In this document: positions 2,708 through 62,205 of the stretch, in pieces
Position numbering within the stretch: the first letter of the stretch is position 1
How the letters are laid out: each line of letters begins with the position of its first letter
NCBI GenBank assembly: GCA_002269645.1
Contig: NIVC01001492.1
Coordinates: forward strand, 3,094-67,093
From: Macrostomum lignano
Taxonomy: Eukaryota
Reading direction: 5' to 3'
DNA: 64,000 nucleotides
Position numbers and translations under genes: made by a program
The notes under the pieces: model-generated
The model's database searches: none
What the model was told of the DNA's origin: nothing
Seen by the model: the letters and a program-made list of their open reading frames with translations, nothing else

Positions 2708-5700
2708 TCAGTAGTAAGTCTCCCGTTCAACAACATTCCCGGGAGACAGTCGACGAAGCAGAAGTTTCCTAATCTCGTCGAAGATAAAGATTAGGCTGCT
2801 GTGGCCGAGCGGCAGGAAGCACCAGACGAATTTCAGCGGCATCATTTTGAGCACCATGTAGGAGTAGGGCACGTAACTCAGCAACATAGCTAAGATGGTC
2901 TCGAAGAACAAGCTGCCGGTCATGGGATGATTTCGCATGCCTGGAATTGAAAACATGTGTGTGCTTCTCTAAATGTACAGTGCAGTTGGTTGCGTGACTC
3001 AGGTTCTACTTCATTTTCTATTCATTTCCGGAACCTGATGTGGCCTTTACTAATTTAGCAATGAAATTAGAAGCAATTTTGATGGTTAAAATTAGGAGAG
3101 GGAGAATCTGACTCGAAAAGTCAAGCTCTGCATCAGCTTATGAATGTACATGTGTAGGCATTGTAGGCGATAATTTCTGCGTTACAGGTGGACAGACTCA
3201 GTGTTACAGGTGACAGACTCAGTTTTACAGGTGACAGACTCAGTGTTACAGGTGACAGACTCAGTGTTGCAGGTGACAGACTCAGTGTTACAGGTGACAG
3301 ACCCAGTGTTACTGGGGACTGTCTCCCTGATTACCTTATCTACATGTGCTTATACTGTATTAGTGTTACAATTATTTGCTTCATTGGTAGATTGGGATGA
3401 TATACAATTAATTATTCTTGTTACAGATGGTTGCCTTTGTGATGTTGTCAGCGTCTCGGTAGAATCTTTCTATAAGAAGATAAAAACACACTGGAAGCAT
3501 ATAAAATGACTTTCCCGTTGGCTGAGAAAGTGATTAAGGTGCATATTCATAGGCCCGAGTTCCCCATAATGATACGAAACTCATTGAAGCGATAAACACG
3601 TTAATGGATTTTCGGTTGCTTTGGCAATAATCTTCTTTGGGCGCGCTGGTTTGATGCTTCTCTGATCTTTCCGGCTGCTCATGGCATAGCAGATGATCGC
3701 ATGATGCGTGTATATCGCACTTTGCTCAGCTGATCGTGTATGATTGATTGGATTGACGGGAAATTCTGCCTCAATGGCACGGACGCTATAGCATGTTTTA
3801 CAAATTCTATAGTAGGAATTCTCTTGTGTACTCGTATTACGCTCGTATTAATCTATTTTGCAGACTTTATGTGTATTTGGATTTGTAGTTATTAATTCTA
3901 AGTTAATATTTGAGTTTGCAGTCATCACTGAGGATTCTGTGCAGTCATCATGCACTGAGGATTCTGCAGTCATCACTGAGGATTCTGTGCAGTCATCACT
4001 GAGGATTCTGTGCAGTCATCACTGAGGATTCTGTGCAGTCATCACTGAGGACTCTGTGCAGTCATCACTGAGGATTCTGTGCAGTCATCACTGAGGATTC
4101 TGTGCAATCATCATGCACTGAGGATTCTGTGCAGTCATCATGCACTGAGGACTCTGTGCAGTCATCACTGAGGATTCTGTGCAGTCATTCTCATGCTCAA
4201 TATTCTGAAAACTTACCCTGCTGGAAGACGGACAATCGCCTGGTCTTGCAGATGACTAAATCCGCCCATTGCACAATCACGATGGCAATAAAGAAGCCGG
4301 TCTGACAGGACATTTCCAGTTTTTTACGCTCGTTGTAGGTCCATTCCTGACCGAATGAGTCCTCCAGACTGTCCTCCGTACGGTTGTCCCAAGGCTCGCG
4401 CAAGAAGAACAGCCTCCTGGGTAGGAAGCCATTGTGAGCCATGATGCAGAAGTACACCAGCCAGCCTGCGGCAGCCTGCAGCATCCCAATCTGCCCGTAG
4501 GCCATGCCGATCAACCGACCGTTGACCAGCCGGTCTCGGCTCGGGTTCCTCGGCGCCCGGCTCATAATGTCGTTCTCGGCCGATTCGTAAGCGAAGCTGA
4601 TCGCAGGGAACATGTCTGTGCCGAGGTCGATGCACAGGATGTGCACTGTGCCCAGGGCCAGCGGCAGGCCCAGCACAATGAAGAATATGAATGGCACCAT
4701 CTCTGGCACCTTCGAGGTGAGCGTGTACGCGATCGACTTCTTCAGATTGTCGAATATGAGACGGCCTGGGAATTTTTTAGCGGATAGCAGTTGGAAGCGA
4801 AATTGAAGTTTTTGACATCCAAAAATGGGGGCTTCTAACTCTAGAATGAATTCTTTGATGTCATTTTTGACAACCAAATATCCTTGATTTGGAAGTTTCT
4901 GACACCCAGACTGAGGCTTGCATTCATTGCATTCCCAACCAAGCAACGCAGCGTGATCTACTCTCCCAAAAAAACGTCTCGATTTCGGTTCATCGAGCTG
5001 GCCTCTCATCCAGTTAAGCCAGTCAACTCAACTGAGCAGCTTTCGTGCCCCACCCCCCAAGAATTCAATCTCTCTGGATTGGATAAAGACAAGCGCCTCC
5101 CCCAAGCTGAGTTGAGACCGACCGACCATAGGAAAGTCCGACGGCGAGGCTGTTTTATGCAATCGAATTGCGAGAGCCGTCGCTAGAGAGGGGGACTTTT
5201 TCAATCGGGAAAACTCTCATTTCTTCCCGGCGACCACTGCCTCTGCCCCGAGCTGCGTAAATCTTACTAAATAACCGTCAGATGCAAATTTTTACTTTTG
5301 AGATTAAATTGACTGGCTGGGCTCGGTTGGGAGCTGGGAAATATGAGCTATTCGAGAGCTCGAATATGACCGTGCCTTGATGATTTTGTGGACGTTAAAT
5401 AAGATGAAATTACCCGAAGGATGTGGCAATTTAAGGTTCATCTGAAATCCTAACCGGAGCTAAATGACTTCACTAACTCTAGTCTCATAAACTCCATCTC
5501 TAATCTTCCCGGAATTCTCTTAGAATATCTCACTTACGACCTCACCTTCTTCAACTCCAACAACAATGGAAGCGAAATTGTCATCCAGCAGTATCATGTC
5601 CGCCGCCTGCTTGCTCACGTCGCTCCCAGTGATGCCCATAGCAACGCCAATGTCCGCCTTCTTCAAAGCCGGCGAATCGTTCACTCCGTCCCCAGTCACC

Positions 5701-8700
5701 GCCACAATATTGCCCAGCTTTTGAAATGCTTCAACAATGATGAGCTTCTGCTGCGGACTGGTCCTGGCGAACACTATCTCCCGGTGTTGGCGAATGATTT
5801 CAACCAGCTCGTCCGCTGACATGTCCTTGAGCTGGCCGCCATTCACTACTCGGGCCTCGGCTTCGGCCGGGTTCACCGATTCTACGGGAACTCCGCGCTC
5901 TTTGGCCAGCGACTCGGGCGTCCGGCTGTTCGGCGAGATGATACCGACACCTCGGGCGATGGCCGCCGCCGTGATTGGATGGTCGCCGGTAACCATGACT
6001 ACCTGTTTTTAGTAACAGTGGACAGTTAGGCTTTGCTTGCAAGCGTTAGGTTAAAAACAGCCCAGCAACAGCCTAGCAACAGCCTAGCAAAAAACTAACA
6101 ACAGTCTAGCAACAGCCTAGCAACAACCTGACAACAGCCTAGCAACAACCTAAAAACAGCCTAGCAGCAAACTAACAACAGCCTAGCAACAGCCTAGCAA
6201 AAAACTAACAACAGGCTAGCAGCAACCTAACAACAGTCTAGCAACAGCCTAGCAACAACCTAACAACAGCCTAGCAACAATCTAACAACAGCCTAGAAAC
6301 AGCCTAGCAAACCTAACAACCTCCTAGCAACAGCCTAGCAACAGCCCAGCAGCAGCCTAGCAACAGCCTAGCAACAACCTGACAACAGCCTAGCAACAAC
6401 CTAAAAACAGCCTAGCAGCAAACTAACAACAGCCTAGCAACATCCTAGCAAAAAACTAACAACAGGCTAGCAGCAACCTAACAACAGTCTAGCAACAGCC
6501 TAGCAACAACCTAACAACAGCCTAGCAACAACCTAACAACAGCCTAGAAACAGCCTAGCAAACCTAGCAACCTCCTAGCAACAGCCTAGCAACAGCCCAG
6601 CAGCAGCCTAGCAACAGCCTAGCAACAAACTAACAACAGGCTAGCAGAAACCTAACAACAGTCTAGCAACAGCCTAGCAACAACCTAACAATAGCCTAAC
6701 AACAACCTAACAACAGCCTAGCAACAGCCCAGCAACAGCCTAGCAACAAACTAATAGTATCCCTGGATTTTACACATTTTTCTCCTTGGCATTATCTCAC
6801 CTTATTGATCTCCAAAAGTTAGCAAGGAATTTTGAAAAGCTAAAGCTACCTGTGCCTGAAATTAGCTTAAACAATTAACAAACCCTCCAAAACCAAATGT
6901 GATTTAAAAAATGAGGAAGAAGCGCAGCGCACCCGGATCCCGGCGCTCCGGCATTTCTCCACCGCGTACGGCACGGCAGCTCGTGGCGGATCGATCATGC
7001 TCATCAGGCCGACAAAGCGATAGCCGGTGAGTGGAAAGTTCACCGTCTCAGTATTGTACTTGTAGTTGTCGGGATAATCCTTGGCAGGTAGTCGAAAGTC
7101 GCAGAAGCCGAGCACTCGCTCCCCGAGGCTGCCCAAGTTTTCGTAGGCGTCCTGAAATTTTTTCTTCCACTTGGCGTCCAGAGCGACCTCGGCGCCGTCA
7201 ACGAGAATGCTCGAGCAGCGGTCCAGAATCCGCTCCGGAGCGCCCTTCATCACGCACAGGTGGCGAGCTTCGCCGTCCATTTGAACAGTTCTGTGCACAG
7301 AAACCTGCATGTGCGTACGACGAGTTTTGAATGTTTAAATCACTCGGCACGGGGTAAAATGGAAAACTTTTGTATTGGTCAGACTGGAAATCTCAGTTGG
7401 AACAATTGAATGTTACTGGGGTCATTGGAATGTAACTGGGGTCAATGAAATGTTACTGGGGTTATTGGACTGGTACAGGGGGTCATTTAAATGGTAAAGG
7501 GGTCATTGGAATGGTAAAGGGGTCATTGGAATGGTACAGGGATCATTGGAATGGCAAAAGGGTCATTGGAATGGTACAGGGGTCATTGGAATGGTTCAGG
7601 GATCATTGGAATGGTACAGGGGGTCATTAGAATGGTACAGGGGTCATTGGAATGGTACAGGGGTCATTGGAATGGTACAGGGGGTCATTGGAATGTTACT
7701 GGGGTCATTGGAATAGTACAGGGGGTCATTGGAATGGTAAAGGGGTCATTGGAATGGTAAAGGGGTCATTGGAATGGTAAAGGGGTCATTGGAATGGTAA
7801 AGGGTCATTGGAATGGTACAGGGGGTCATTGGAATGGTAAAGGGGTCATTGGAATGGTAAAGGGTCATTGGAATGGTACAGGGGTCATTGGAATGGTTCA
7901 GGGGTCATTGGAATGGTACAGGGGGTCATTGGAATGGTACAGGGGTCATTGGAATGGTACAGGGGTCATTGGAATGGTACAGGGGGTCATTGGAATGTTA
8001 CTGGGGTCATTGGAATAGTACAGGGGGTCATTGGAATGGTAAAGGGGTCGTTGGAATGTTACTGGGGTCATTGGAATGGTAAAGGGTCATTGGAATGGTA
8101 CAGGGGTCATTGGAATGGTACAGGGGGTCATTGGAATGGTAAAGGGGTCATTGGAATGGTACAGGGGTCATTGGAATGGTACAGGGGGTCATTGGAATGG
8201 TACAGGGGGTCATTGGAATGGTAAAGGGGTCATTGGAATGGTAAAGGGTCATTGGCATGGTACAGGGGTCATAGGAATGGTACAGGGGTCATTGGAATGG
8301 TACAGGGGGTCATTTGAATGTTACTAGGGTCATTGGAATGGTACAGGGGGTCATTGGAATGTTACTGGAGTTATTGGAATGGTAAAGGGGTCATTGGAAT
8401 GGTAAAGGTCATTGGCATGGTACAGGGGTCATTAGAATGGTACAGGGGGTCATTGAAATGGTACAGGGGGTCATTTGAATGTTATTGGGGTCATTCGAAT
8501 GGTACAGGGGTCGTTGGAATGTTACTGGGGTCATTGGAATGGTAAAGGGTCATTGGAATGGTACAGGGGTCATTGTAATGGTACAGGGGGTCATTGGAAT
8601 GGTACAGGGGTCATTGGAATAGTACAGGGGGTCATTGGAATGGTAAAGGGGTCATTGGAATGGTAAAGGGTCATTGGCATGGTACAGGGGTCATTGGAAT

Positions 8701-11700
8701 GATACAGGGGGTCATTGGAATGTTACTGGGGTCATTGGAATGGTACAGGGGTCATTGGAATGGTGTCGGGTCAGAAAAATAGCAACATGGTCATTCCATA
8801 GTTATCATGTACTTAGGAGGGTCAACGGAGTCACGGAATTTAACTTTACTGGGGTCATTGGAATGGTACAGGGGGTCCTTGGAACGTTACTGGGGTCATT
8901 GGAATCGTAAAGGGGTCATTGGAATGGTACAGGGATCATTGGAATGGTAAAGGGTCATTGGAATGATACAGGGGGTCATTGGAATGGTACAGGAGGGTCA
9001 TTGGAATGTTACTGGGGTCATTGGAGTATTACTGGGGTCATTGGAATGGTACAGGGGGGTCATTGGAATGTTACTGGGGTCTTTGGAGTATTACTGGGGT
9101 CATTGGAATCGTAAAGGGGTCATTGGAATGGTGCAGGGATCATTGGAATGGTACAGGGGGGTCATTGGAATGGTACAGGGGGTCATTGGAATGGTACAGG
9201 GGGTCATTGGAATGGTACAGGGGGTCATTGGAATGGTACAGGGGGGTCATTGGAATGTTACTGGGGTCATTGGAGTGTTACTGGGGTCATTGGAATGTTA
9301 CTGGGGTCATTGGAGTGTTACTGGGGTCATTGAAGTGGTACAGGGGGGTCATTGGAATGTTACTGGGGTCATTGGAGTGTTACTGGGGTCATTGGAACGT
9401 TACTGGGGTCATTGGAATGGTACAGGGGTCATTGAAATGGTGGCGGGTCAGTAAAATAGCAACATGGTCATTCCAAAGGTATCATGTGTGACAGGAGGGT
9501 CAACGGAGTCACTGAAGTTTTACCCTCACCTGAAACTTGTTCTGCGAATTGAAGGGTATCTCAGCCAGTTTCGGGCATTTCAGTCTAGCGGCGGCCACCG
9601 ACTTGACTTCGCTGGGCAGGTTCAGCTCCGAGCACTTCAGCAGGGCCGTCTCGGAGGCGTCGCCGTTAACTTTACGGCGAAGCACCGGATGTGACTCCTG
9701 GTTGGCCTCAAATTTAGCCCGGCTGCAGAGCATAGCAACTCGAACTGAGAAGTTGGTTAGTTCACAAAGACTCAACTGTTTGACACAAAGACTCGGACTG
9801 TTAGACACAAAGACTCTACTGTTAGACACAAAGACTTGGACTGTTAGACACAAATATTCTACTGTTAGACACAAAGAATCTACTGTTAGACACAAAGACT
9901 CGGACTGTTAGACACAAAGACTCTACTGTTAGACACAAAGACTTGGACTGTTAGACACAAATATTCTACTGTTAGACACAAATATTCTACTGTTAGATAC
10001 AAATAATCTACTTTTAGACACAAAGACTTGGACTGTTAGACACAAAGACTCGGAGTGTTAGACACAAAGACTTGGACTGTTAGACACAAAGACTCGGAGT
10101 GTTAGACACAAAGACTTGGACTGTTAGACACAAAGACTCAGAGTGTTAGACACAAAGACTCTACTGTTAGACACAAAGACTCAGAGTGTTAGACACAAAG
10201 AATCTACTGTTAGACACAAAGAATCTACTGTTAGACACAAAGAATCTACTGTTAGACACAAGTATTCGGACTGTTAGACACAAAGAATCTACTGTTAGAC
10301 ACAAGGATTCGGACTGTTAGACACAAAGAATCTACTGTTAGACACAAAGAATCTACTGTTAGACACAAGGATTCGGACTGTTAGACACAAAGACTCGGAG
10401 TGTTAGACACAAAGACTTGGACTGTTAGACACAAAGACTCAGAGTGTTAGACACAAAGACTTGAACTGTTAGACACAAAGACTCAGAGTGTTAGACACAA
10501 AGACTCGGACTGTTAGACACAAAGACTCGGACTGTTAGACACAAAGACTCGGACTGTTAGACACAAAGACTTAGGCCCAGAAACTCATCTGCAATACATA
10601 ACCTACTGTTAGAGACACAATGGACTGGTAGTCACAAATGCGACCTTTATGATCTGAGCTAATAGAACTGAAAATAAATAAATTTGGCCGCAAATCTAGC
10701 TTACACAACGCTGAGCAAGTAACATCGCTAACATCGAATTTCTGACTTCCGCTCTGATTCTCAGTGGTGTCAACGTTGTACACTTTGCCGGAATACCACA
10801 GATGGGCAACCGTCATGCGATTCTGAGTCAGCGTACCTGCAATTAATCGGATTTAAGCGCCATCCACGTAGGTGTTTTTAAATTAAAGTGTGTACCAGTA
10901 ACTAAAAGTACTCTATCTCAAGTTTCACCGGTTTTGTCGGAGCAGATAACAGAGGTTGAGCCGAGCGTTTCGACAGCTTCCAGATTCTTAACCAGACAGT
11001 TTTTCACCGCCATCTGCTTAGCGGTCAGAGTGAGACAGAGCGTCACAGTTACCAACAAACCTTCGGGCACGTTGGCAACAATGATACCAATGAGGAACAG
11101 CACCGACTGGATCCACTTGTAGCCAAAGGCGAATGAGATGCCAAAGAACACCAGGCCGGTGATAACTGCGACCGCCGTGATGATGCGGACAAAGTAGTCG
11201 ATTTCTCTGGCAATGGGAGTCTTGCCCGTGTCCAGACCGCTGGTGAGGTTAGCGATTCGCCCCATCACTGTGTTGTCGCCGGTGAAAGTCACAACACCGA
11301 TGGCCTCTCCTTCGAGTACGTTGGTGGAAAAGAAAGCCAAATTCTTGGTCTCAAGAGGATTTTCGTGTGTAAACTCGGGCGACCTGGGCTGCGGCTCGCT
11401 CTCCCCTGTGAGGCACGAGTTGTCCACCTTGAAGCTCTTGCAGCTCAGAACCCGGACGTCTGCTGGCATTCGATCGCCAGCCTGAACCCGGATGACATCG
11501 CCAACTACCAAATCTGTGGCGGAAACATCCTGCTCGACGCCGCTTCTGATGACACGAGCGTGCTGCGGCACCATCTTCTTGAAGCTGTCCATTATGGCTT
11601 CGGATTTGGACTCCTGGTAGAATGAGAAACAGCCGGTGAGCAGGTTGACAACTGCAAGCACGATGCCTAAGATGAGCTGCTCAATTTGAGCATACTGCCC

Positions 11701-13013
11701 GTTTTGAGCTCGGTCGATGCCGTAGGCCACAATGCACAGAATGGAGGCGATCCACAGCAGGTTGGCAAACATGTTGGTCATGCAGCGCAGCAACCGCAGC
11801 CACTGAGGCGTTGTCGGCGGCGGCGTGAGCTCGTTGCTACCGTACAGTTCGAGCCTACGTTCGGCTTCGGATTCCTCTAAGCCCGATTCGGCGTCCGTGC
11901 CGAGTCGCTGGAGGGCAGAGAGAGAGTGAAGATGAGAGTTGCTTTTGTAGATAAGTTTAATAGTGAATCAAGGTTATTTGTCCAAAGCAAAAAATTCAAA
12001 ATCCCCAAGCTCTATGGTCAGGTAAAAGCTGTGTTCATTAACCAGAAACGGAGCCAATAATGTAATCATGGCCAACGAACATTGTGCATGCACATTGTTA
12101 CAGCAGTTCATCAGGAAACGCAAACGCTAGCTGGAACTGCAACTCCTCTTCTCCTTTAACAACATGGAGGCCGATATATATCAAGAGGTGAATAAAAATT
12201 GCAGTAAATATTCGTGTTCAATAAACATAAAAATCAGGGGGGGGGGCAAGATGCTTAATGGATTAGCATAATGTTTTTCAATAACAGGAAGCTCTAAGCT
12301 GTAAATCCTCCCCCTAAGGTGAGGTCTTTCACCGCGTTGCTTTTGTGACGTTCTAATGCGTCTGGCAAACGGTAAGTCTACAGCTGTAGTTCCAGGAACG
12401 TTGCTTAGTTCTTTGAAAAAGGAAAAAAGCACAGAAAATCAAAAGACGGCAGCGGTTTAGACAGGCTTTAGCTAATTAAGGAATTGGAACTGGTGTACAG
12501 TACAGCTGGTCAGGCCAGTTATTTTGGGAAAAATTTTTTTTCGGAAAGATGCTTTCTCGGGTTGAACAAACGTGTTTTTTACATATACGAATAATTGAAG
12601 TTTTTTCAAACATTGGTAGGTAACAGTTTGACATGCGCAACACTTTTGTTTAAATAAAGGCTCGCAGATATATTAGCACTGAAAATTACCTGCATCAACT
12701 CCGCTACGGGAACTTTGTGATCGTCAATTTCAATTTCTTTCTTCAAGTCGTTCAGTTCGCGATCTTTCCGCATCACATCCGTGTTGTTGATGTTGTAAGG
12801 CACATCGGCGCTGCTGTCTGCAGGAGGCCTCGGCGCCGGCCAGAGGAGTCGCATCCACCAGCTGCGAATGTTTCGAAAATCGATGATTGACGTCAGTGAC
12901 GGCCGGCTGTCGTTGACCCTGACCGGCTGTCTTCGTTGGCGAGCGTAGCGATACTCGCGAAGAATTACACTGCGCGCAGCCAAAGGCGCTCGAAAACCCT
13001 GATGGTCTGGCAT
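2708..13013 (-). CDS. ATP1A: Na+/K+-transporting P2C ATPase alpha subunit, complete, 8 exons, about 1086 aa
   Basis: Exons 13013-12690, 11907-10929, 10836-10705, 9744-9530, 7304-6933, 6002-5546, 4765-4217 and 2940-2708 are all GT-AG and phase-consistent (3261 nt total). Motifs seen: [76 protein letters not shown] and C-terminal ETYY. The start Met is uncertain. Confidence 0.96.
3183..3322. repeat. 21-bp minisatellite GTGTTACAGGTGACAGACTCA (about 6 copies), ATPase intron 7
   Basis: Tandem copies read directly. Confidence 0.9.
3917..4190. repeat. 23-bp minisatellite GCAGTCATCACTGAGGATTCTGT with 28-bp variants, ATPase intron 7
   Basis: Tandem copies begin about 25 nt from the donor at 4216. 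Confidence 0.9.
6058..6752. repeat. 11-bp minisatellite AACAGCCTAGC/AACAACCTAAC with an internal duplication of about 250 bp, ATPase intron 5
   Basis: Tandem copies; the variant caggctag at 6212 recurs at 6463. Confidence 0.9.
7405..9445. repeat. 20/21-bp minisatellite GGGGTCATTGGAATGGTACA (about 2 kb), ATPase intron 4
   Basis: Tandem copies; accounts for all the EWYRG/MVQG ORFs in the track. Confidence 0.95.
9775..10572. repeat. 22-bp minisatellite TGTTAGACACAAAGACTCGGAC, ATPase intron 3
   Basis: Fills most of the intron and ends about 30 nt from the acceptor at 9745. Confidence 0.95.

Positions 13014-60861: not shown

Positions 60862-62205
<1,344 letters not shown>

Follow-up and report, generated by a model that had tools for sequence, protein, structure and literature searches.

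A 64,000-nt stretch of the Macrostomum lignano genome (contig NIVC01001492.1 of assembly GCA_002269645.1, positions 3,094 to 67,093; referred to below as the window) contains one intact eight-exon gene for a Na+/K+-ATPase (NKA) alpha subunit on its minus strand (13013..2708), Mlig006173g1. The encoded protein carries a lysine in transmembrane helix 5 (TM5) at the position of Asn776 and retains the asparagine at position 324 in TM4. Judged by sequence, the known pump that this gene is most like is the alpha2KK pump of Artemia franciscana (P17326; structure 8K1L; PMC10756188), yet it fails one of the two features that define alpha2KK at that level, the TM4 lysine. Comparisons with other proteins further indicate that the gene is not a one-off and belongs to a recurrent class of P2C pumps with Lys776 (K776). 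These findings bear on a proposal made from the letters of the window alone, the sequence-only reading, according to which the gene encodes an independently evolved Na+ pump with reduced stoichiometry.

The TM5 lysine and the gene that carries it

Residues were mapped to codons in a 210-sequence alignment using the numbering of pig alpha1, which was obtained through echidna alpha1 minus 5 and agrees at 17/17 landmark residues. The canonical reference set within this comparison consisted of 200 animal NKA alphas, and all codons given are on the minus strand. Position 776 is Asn in 200/200 canonical alphas and Lys in the window protein (AAG, 4712-4710), a codon that is one third-base change away from the Asn codons AAC and AAT. 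At TM4 position 324 the protein has Asn (AAC, 11073-11071), as do all 200 canonical alphas, and at TM6 position 799, which is Thr in 198/200 of them and His in none, it has His (CAC, 4643-4641). The sequence-only reading had placed these three residues exactly, down to the base. Additional departures from the canonical sequence are Met in place of Ile780, which lies a single turn of the helix away from K776 (ATG, 4700-4698), Ala at Pro794 in the TM5-TM6 loop (GCC, 4658-4656), and Phe at Val810 (TTC, 4610-4608), a residue found at that position in 0/200 canonical alphas. The I777V and T781V changes in TM5, which had been listed together with I780M, are also present. Five of the six site I/II ligands are kept (E327, S775, E779, D804, and D808), with N776 to Lys as the sole departure. 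All of the site III and C-terminal residues that had been reported as intact are indeed retained (Y771, T774, Q923, D926, E954, and the terminal ETYY) together with R933, leaving both Na+ site III and the C-terminal switch complete. Histidine was not among the eight commonest states of position 799 in any group of 142 diverse P2C representatives, and among the K776 and reference proteins compared it was seen in the window gene only.

On sequence grounds, the Mlig006173g1 product is unambiguously a P2C NKA alpha subunit. It matches the TIGR01106 profile (ATPase-IIC_X-K) with 1575 bits against a cutoff of 946, over residues 83-1086 of the protein and positions 2-997 of the 997 in the profile, and the Pfam domains recorded for it are PF00690, PF00122, PF13246, PF00702, and PF00689. 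The catalytic motifs TGES and DKTGT (D369) are present in the translated model, all phosphorylation and nucleotide-binding motifs are intact, and the beta-contact motif reads SFGQEW instead of SYGQ. When the protein was compared with the PDB using phmmer, it scored 1394 bits against pig NKA alpha1, 1347 against Artemia alpha2KK, and about 1200 against H+/K+-ATPases. In the latter (ATP4A, ATP12A) a TM5 lysine also takes up one cation site and reduces how many ions are carried, but it lies at the Ser775 position, one residue before 776 (PMC10756188), whereas the Macrostomum protein keeps Ser775 and Na+ site III and is about 190 bits closer to NKAs. Identification of the window protein as an H+/K+-ATPase alpha was rejected on the position of its lysine, which follows an unchanged Ser775 instead of replacing it. 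Its assignment to the NKA alphas was borne out by the profile score and by its greater closeness to NKAs than to H+/K+-ATPases, and its description as a single-lysine form by K776 and an unchanged Asn324.

The presence of K776 in Macrostomum is far beyond chance and is no one-off sequencing error. The AAG (776), CAC (799), and AAC (324) codons also occur in two further genomic copies, Mlig006173g3 (locus L006) and Mlig006173g2 (locus L007), and the same residues are found in two proteins of an older M. lignano assembly (P0002 and P0003). The possibility of a consensus error, raised in the sequence-only reading, did not survive this comparison. In the window copy as well as in L006, the open reading frame runs unbroken over eight exons with canonical splice sites. 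The three copies differ by 11 distinct synonymous and only 2 non-synonymous changes; because about three quarters of random coding changes are non-synonymous, these counts point to purifying selection since the copies split. The gene could also have been silent, another doubt voiced at the outset, but the GenBank gene models of M. lignano were derived from a genome-guided RNA-seq transcriptome to which an expression filter was applied (PMC5730564), and the model with an exon structure identical to ours therefore implies a spliced transcript. Evidence for an assembly or consensus artefact, or for a decaying pseudogene, comes from L007, which has a 2-nt gap in exon 7 (region 9194-9740) that matches the frameshifted C-terminus of P0125, and in the retrieved locus of which exon 8 was not found. 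This copy may be a decaying duplicate or reflect an assembly flaw. Set against the codons shared by three loci and recurring as residues in a second assembly, the intact frames and canonical splicing of the window copy and L006, the signature of constraint, and the transcript-based annotation, an artefact or pseudogene is very improbable as an account of the lysine and is effectively refuted.

The gene model was assembled from three minus-strand frames with each junction checked, and all seven introns are GT-AG. Exon 1 (12690..13013) runs from the annotated ATG at 13013 to a donor GT after 12690. Homology to NKA alphas starts at Met 12773, inside this exon, and the 1006-aa product read from there matches GenBank PAA67335.1 ("hypothetical protein BOX15_Mlig006173g1") at 100% identity. 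The annotated form has 1086 aa (P0001, 100% identical) and begins at the upstream in-frame ATG at 13013. Its 80-aa N-terminal extension (12774-13013) shows no similarity to other NKA alphas, and because the conserved N-terminus begins at Met 12773, the true start codon is uncertain. Exon 2 (10929..11907) encodes TM1-TM4, TGES, and the start of DKTG, and it includes the codons for N324 given above, E327 (11064-11062), and D369 (10938-10936). It is followed, after a phase 1 intron within the Gly codon of DKTG, by exon 3 (10705..10836), which ends in SAL, and by exon 4 (9530..9744), which encodes part of the N domain and has a phase 0 intron at its 3' end (pig 482). Exon 5 (6933..7304) extends from KGAPE to CRSAGIR and has a phase 0 intron at its 3' end as well (pig 605). 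Part of the P domain is encoded by exon 6 (5546..6002), which ends in GVEEG, while exon 7 (4217..4765) covers TM5-TM8 and carries K776. The last exon (2708..2940) encodes TM9-TM10, E954 (2902-2900), and the C-terminal RETYY, and it closes with a TGA stop at 2710-2708. Like the codons, all of these exons are on the minus strand. Introns 3, 4, 5, and 7 consist largely of minisatellites, with 37 copies of a 22-nt unit (9763-10571), 100 copies of a 20-nt unit (7408-9441), 63 copies of an 11-nt unit (6056-6748), and 11 copies of a 23-nt unit (3917-4188), respectively, and these arrays yield long spurious open reading frames on the plus strand.

K776 pumps in other lineages and the origin of the Macrostomum gene

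The best BLAST matches of the window protein are flatworm NKAs, and its second-best non-self match is a Clonorchis sinensis protein that reads YTLTSKIPE in TM5. A search with this protein led to a K776 clade in plagiorchiid flukes (hereafter the fluke K-type) with members in Clonorchis, Opisthorchis, two Paragonimus species, Fasciola gigantica, and Echinostoma; a third Paragonimus, P. westermani, was added by a later profile search. The lysine is strict in six fluke orthologs, which are 72-96% identical to the Clonorchis protein, and all members have Met324 and Thr799 as well as an intact site III and C-terminus. Their database entries (for example, C. sinensis GAA48524.1, here P0221, and O. 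viverrini T265_12551) are annotated only as generic NKA alphas. Loci were retrieved from Paragonimus heterotremus (L001:501-3503), Opisthorchis viverrini (L004:301-3312), and Echinostoma caproni (L003:301-3469). The Paragonimus and Opisthorchis coding sequences translate without interruption and are intronless, the Echinostoma model has only a single 50-nt "intron", and the genes are neighbors of, or nested in, a CASK-like kinase/MAGUK gene that is encoded by the other strand. Since the canonical Fasciola hepatica NKA gene has at least 12 introns across 19 kb, the intronless fluke K-type is a retrogene. No schistosome or cestode ortholog was present among the best 120 matches of the search with the fluke protein.

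When 1.84 billion cluster representatives were searched with a profile, 10 of the 150 best diverse P2C proteins had Lys at position 776. The carriers were the ichthyosporean Sphaerothecum (P0334), the foraminiferan Nonionella (P0450), the crab Scylla (a fragment, P0456), the bdelloid rotifer Didymodactylos carnosus (P0474/P0404), Paragonimus westermani, and five more eukaryotic sequences from metagenomes or transcriptomes (P0340, P0345, P0357, P0363, and P0364). The D. carnosus pump has Lys at both 324 and 776, which is the Artemia combination, but has Val in place of D926, and in several of the protist forms D926 is lost or E779 is replaced by Gln. Going by these residues, the K776 class is functionally heterogeneous, and it is the Macrostomum and fluke proteins that have preserved Na+ site III in full. 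An alignment of 43-aa TM5 probes that included synthetic N776K variants was also run against a set of 5.8 billion proteins; this search returned only exon-sized fragments (matches of 37-76 aa), one of them with K776 (P0126). The exchange of Asn for Lys requires a single third-position transversion, so its recurrence should be mutationally easy and selection the limiting factor. The literature searched describes the Artemia lysines as unique, and the wider K776 pattern appears undescribed as far as the literature could be searched: no description of K776 pumps outside Artemia was found, although coverage of the literature was incomplete and their absence from it is unproven.

Several positions in TM5 and TM6 change together with K776. 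For Artemia alpha2KK the comparison was limited to residues 746-800 of 8K1L (TM5-TM6), and alpha2KK was the top PDB match for the TM5-TM6 probe only, not for a TM3-TM4 probe with K324. Position 780, Ile in 198/200 canonical alphas, is Leu in Artemia and in the flukes and Met in Macrostomum. Position 794, Pro in 199/200, is Ala in Artemia and Macrostomum and Val in the flukes. Position 815 is Met in Artemia and the flukes and Phe in Macrostomum; it is already polymorphic in canonical alphas (Leu in 127, Met in 73), and only the Macrostomum Phe is distinctive. Ile780 was absent from all 12 K776 lineages scored, where Met, Leu, Val, Thr, Ser, or Phe took its place, and it was present in 51/83 diverse N776 representatives and in 20/47 of the most divergent ones. 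The 12 lineages are not strictly independent phylogenetically, and the association is no formal test. The loss of Ile780 along with K776 is suggestive of a need for space around the lysine side chain within the core formed by TM5 and TM6, and the co-substitutions at 780 and 794 argue, as far as aligned residues can, that the lysine is accommodated alike within this core across lineages. Replacement of Pro794 as a universal signature of K776 proved only partly true, with Pro being kept in 6/10 K776 representatives, and a partnership of position 799 with K776 was rejected, since divergent P2C pumps that keep N776 commonly have Leu or Met there. It had been suggested that T799H, I777V, I780M, and T781V compensate for the lysine. 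For Ile780 the suggestion gains from the finding that its loss is general to K776 pumps, but I777V and T781V lack comparable support and T799H is unique to this gene.

A separate observation concerns the TM1-TM2 loop of the window protein (11680-11715, pig 111-122), which is the cardiotonic-steroid-binding loop. Its borders are not Gln111/Asn122, and the residues there are ambiguous: Asp and Glu according to the multiple alignment versus Arg and Gln according to the pairwise alignment. The fluke K-type has Glu at position 111. Charged residues at the 111/122 borders go with low ouabain sensitivity in rodent alpha1.

Identity of the window protein to canonical alphas is 62-64% irrespective of phylum (63% for Mlig021528, P0042/P0046, the canonical alpha of M. 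lignano itself), as compared with 72-86% identity of canonical alphas among themselves. Of 531 positions at which canonical alphas are conserved to at least 97%, the protein departs from the consensus at 61. Among the seven introns of its gene, three occupy positions that also hold an intron in canonical NKA genes of flatworms. The phase 1 intron in the DKTG Gly codon and the phase 0 intron at pig 605 (between AGI[KR] and V) are shared with the canonical M. lignano gene, and the phase 0 intron at pig 482 is shared with the canonical F. hepatica gene. The last Macrostomum intron (between FQQ and G) was also considered as shared with the canonical gene but was rejected, as the canonical intron is at pig 899. 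Mlig021528, which belongs to the same genome and family and has two intron positions in common with the window gene, keeps N776, T799, I780, and P794, all of which are replaced in the window paralog. Taken together, introns and sequence indicate that Mlig006173g1 descends from an intron-containing NKA gene that was duplicated at the DNA level, and that the copy diverged rapidly afterwards. The three intron positions and the flatworm NKAs as best BLAST matches make descent from Artemia alpha2KK very unlikely, and on these grounds the independence of the Macrostomum K776 from Artemia is not in serious doubt. The claim of independent evolution therefore holds with respect to Artemia, but not in the sense of an isolated invention, because K776 is also found in flukes, a rotifer, a crab, and protists.

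Within flatworms, descent of the Macrostomum gene and the fluke K-types from one ancient K776 paralog and two independent N776K events are about equally likely. A single origin would entail later replacement by a retrocopy in plagiorchiid flukes and loss in planarians, cestodes, and schistosomes. In its favor, the two groups have in common K776, the replacement of Ile780 and Pro794, an identical V810F, and A267T, C698F, and G950S, and they are grouped in both neighbor-joining (NJ) and maximum-likelihood (ML) trees. At least 15 states are shared exclusively, including the cytoplasmic changes A267T, C698F, Y481F, and K437R, and NJ joins both K-types with a bootstrap of 65%. In the ML analysis (Gonnet-derived rate matrix, empirical frequencies, four gamma categories, 20 taxa, 991 columns), the sister arrangement reached a log-likelihood (lnL) of -16397 to -16399 with a stem of 0.11 and beat independent placements inside flatworms (-16421 to -16427) by 22-28 lnL (z 2.3-2.9; resampling of estimated log-likelihoods, <0.5%). 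However, both branches are long, and just 17 lnL (z 0.7, short of significance) separate the sister arrangement from the best unconstrained independent tree (-16414), in which each K lineage attaches to some other long branch. The sister signal amounts to 14-18 lnL in the 363 membrane columns but only 4-9 lnL (at most 1.5 standard errors) in the 628 cytoplasmic columns. When each K lineage was placed alone, the best spots were on other long branches, with flatworm placements just 3-8 lnL worse. The NJ placement of both K-types outside all canonical bilaterian alphas was taken as long-branch attraction and was not used for rooting. A single origin is further opposed by gene structure, the fluke genes being intronless and next to the CASK-like gene and the Macrostomum gene having seven introns, some of them ancestral, as well as by the different residues at 324 (Asn in Macrostomum, Met in flukes), by an identity between the two K-types of only 57% (55-58% over the fluke proteins), and by the failure to find a schistosome or cestode ortholog in the search mentioned above. 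Artemia, moreover, shows that I780L and P794A can arise convergently with K776.

Transport mechanism and physiological context

In the cryo-electron microscopy structure of alpha2KK (8K1L), the TM5 lysine is located between sites I and II near the oxygens equivalent to those of D804, E327, and E779, and the leftover cavity is too small for two K+ (PMC10756188). The Xenopus double mutant N333K/N785K moves 2Na+:1K+, N785K alone lowers apparent Na+ and K+ affinity with Hill coefficients near 1, and the TM4 lysine of Artemia restores K+ affinity (PMC10756188). Both alpha2KK and the Macrostomum protein are P2C NKA alphas with Lys at the TM5 Asn776 position (Artemia Lys758). In both, Ile780 is replaced (Leu in Artemia, Met in Macrostomum), Pro794 has become Ala, Leu815 is replaced (Met versus Phe), and the carboxylates are kept; both hosts also tolerate wide salinity swings. 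The Macrostomum pump, on the other hand, is without the TM4 Lys (Artemia K308), has His799 and Phe810 where Artemia has Thr and Val, and comes from another phylum.

By analogy with alpha2KK and the Xenopus N785K mutants, we consider it somewhat probable that Lys776 acts as a tethered cation and that the Macrostomum pump moves 2Na+:1K+ per ATP, with its affinities set by lineage-specific repacking. The amino group of Lys776 would project into the ion cavity, between sites I and II, with D804, E779, or D808 as its partner. As a result, E1 would bind one Na+ fewer and E2 one K+ fewer, and the pump would transport 2 Na+ for 1 K+ per ATP. Such a pump would stay electrogenic and could sustain a steeper Na+ gradient per ATP. 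The co-substitutions at Ile780 and P794 point to a lysine side chain that is packed within the core of TM5 and TM6. Without a TM4 lysine, lower K+ and Na+ affinities would be expected unless repacking compensates, for which I780M, I777V, T781V, L784I, P794A, V810F, L815F, and A331V are candidates in the outer halves of TM5/TM6. His799, which is placed more toward the outside of the cell than D804, could make the access of external ions tunable by pH.

Several points weigh against this reading. The TM4 lysine, which was deemed necessary for useful K+ affinity by Artigas et al. (PMC10756188), is absent from the window gene, and the 2Na+:1K+ stoichiometry was measured on the Xenopus double mutant only (PMC10756188). 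The fast evolution of the protein, with its 61 changes at conserved positions, could also reflect a shift to another function, and one of the three copies, L007, has the 2-nt gap described above.

One alternative is that the canonical 3Na+:2K+ stoichiometry is kept and the effect of the lysine is confined to affinities or voltage dependence, as might happen if its side chain snorkeled away from the sites like that of the TM4 lysine in alpha2KK. Every oxygen ligand except N776 is intact, including those of site III, the many accompanying substitutions could make room for the side chain elsewhere, and the stoichiometry measured so far is that of a double mutant. We nonetheless regard this alternative as distinctly unlikely. 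The TM5 lysine of alpha2KK does fill the cavity and leaves too little space for two K+ (PMC10756188), the Xenopus K785 single mutant has Hill coefficients near 1 (PMC10756188), and N776 ligates bound ions directly, such that a cation at that depth is hard to square with full occupancy.

A changed transport mode or role, such as electroneutral or proton-coupled exchange, a K+-independent Na+-ATPase activity, leak or channel-like behavior, or a non-pumping scaffold function, would be in keeping with the very long branch of the window protein (about 0.48 substitutions/site in the ML tree), the changes at otherwise conserved positions, and the unique titratable His at 799. Other K776 lineages have lost site III residues (D926 to V, I, A, or T) or have E779Q. 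The window gene, however, keeps the residues specific for Na+ site III (D926, Q923, E954, Y771, and the YY C-terminus), its phosphorylation and nucleotide motifs are all intact, and its copies are under purifying selection. As for a resemblance to H+/K+-ATPases, their lysine is at 775 rather than 776, and position 804 of the window protein is Asp, not Glu. Such a change of mode or role is unlikely in our estimation.

Returning to the reduced-stoichiometry reading, a broader version of it can be offered tentatively, as a possibility that we hold to be somewhat doubtful. Lysine-tethered pumps of reduced stoichiometry would form a recurrent and partly ancient P2C class found in flatworms, rotifers, crustaceans, and protists, and the Macrostomum member would achieve 2Na+:1K+ transport at physiological affinities without a TM4 lysine through the loss of Ile780 and Pro794 and the gain of His799.

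The fluke K-type, an intronless retrogene with Met324 and Thr799, belongs to endoparasites of vertebrates that face no salinity stress, and bdelloid rotifers live in fresh water and soil. Given K776 in both groups, high salinity cannot be the general driver. A role of the Macrostomum gene in osmoregulation, as put forward in the sequence-only reading, is reasonable with regard to the animal itself, but the endoparasitic fluke homologs weaken a specific link to high salinity. M. lignano is intertidal and euryhaline and is reported to tolerate brief exposure to salinities from fresh water to 80 parts per thousand (PMC5043416); the salinity study in question does not mention ATPases (PMC5043416).

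The literature presents alpha2KK, the only characterized Na+ pump with altered stoichiometry, as a one-of-a-kind adaptation of an extremophile for which two lysines are required. A natural single-lysine pump that is maintained by selection provides a direct test of whether the TM5 lysine alone sets stoichiometry and of how K+ affinity is rescued otherwise. Natural contrasts at position 324 next to K776 are available with Asn (Macrostomum), Met (flukes), and Lys (Artemia and the rotifer), and the repeated loss of Ile780 and Pro794 together with K776 points to structural couplings that are open to mutagenesis. Since M. lignano is amenable to transgenesis and RNA interference, physiology in vivo is also possible. 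The fluke homologs represent a divergent pump isoform in medically important parasites, including human liver and lung flukes.

Other features of the window

Two open reading frames on the plus strand (53488-53874 and 61111-61756) look by eye like fragments of retrotransposon reverse transcriptase and RNase H; neither has a Pfam match at E <= 0.01. On the minus strand, 46318-46550 is a tandem 81-nt repeat with two tRNA-like units that score 30.6 and 28.0 bits with the Rfam tRNA model (gathering score 29). ARAGORN calls no tRNA in this region, and the units are likely to be pseudogenes or repeats of tRNA origin. A SYDE-like Rho GAP gene has exons at 35900-36964 and 41373-41972 on the plus strand (Pfam C2_SYDE and RhoGAP), and a Gln-rich open reading frame at 26457-27707 may belong to the same gene. 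Tandem repeats outside the pump gene comprise a (TAGT)n array of 157 copies (25783-26411), a 4.2-kb minisatellite with 182 copies of a 23-nt unit (31569-35759), and a 2.4-kb (TATC)n microsatellite of about 600 copies (43378-45795), the last of which accounts for the extreme GC skew (-0.8) and the low GC content of the 44-46 kb bin.

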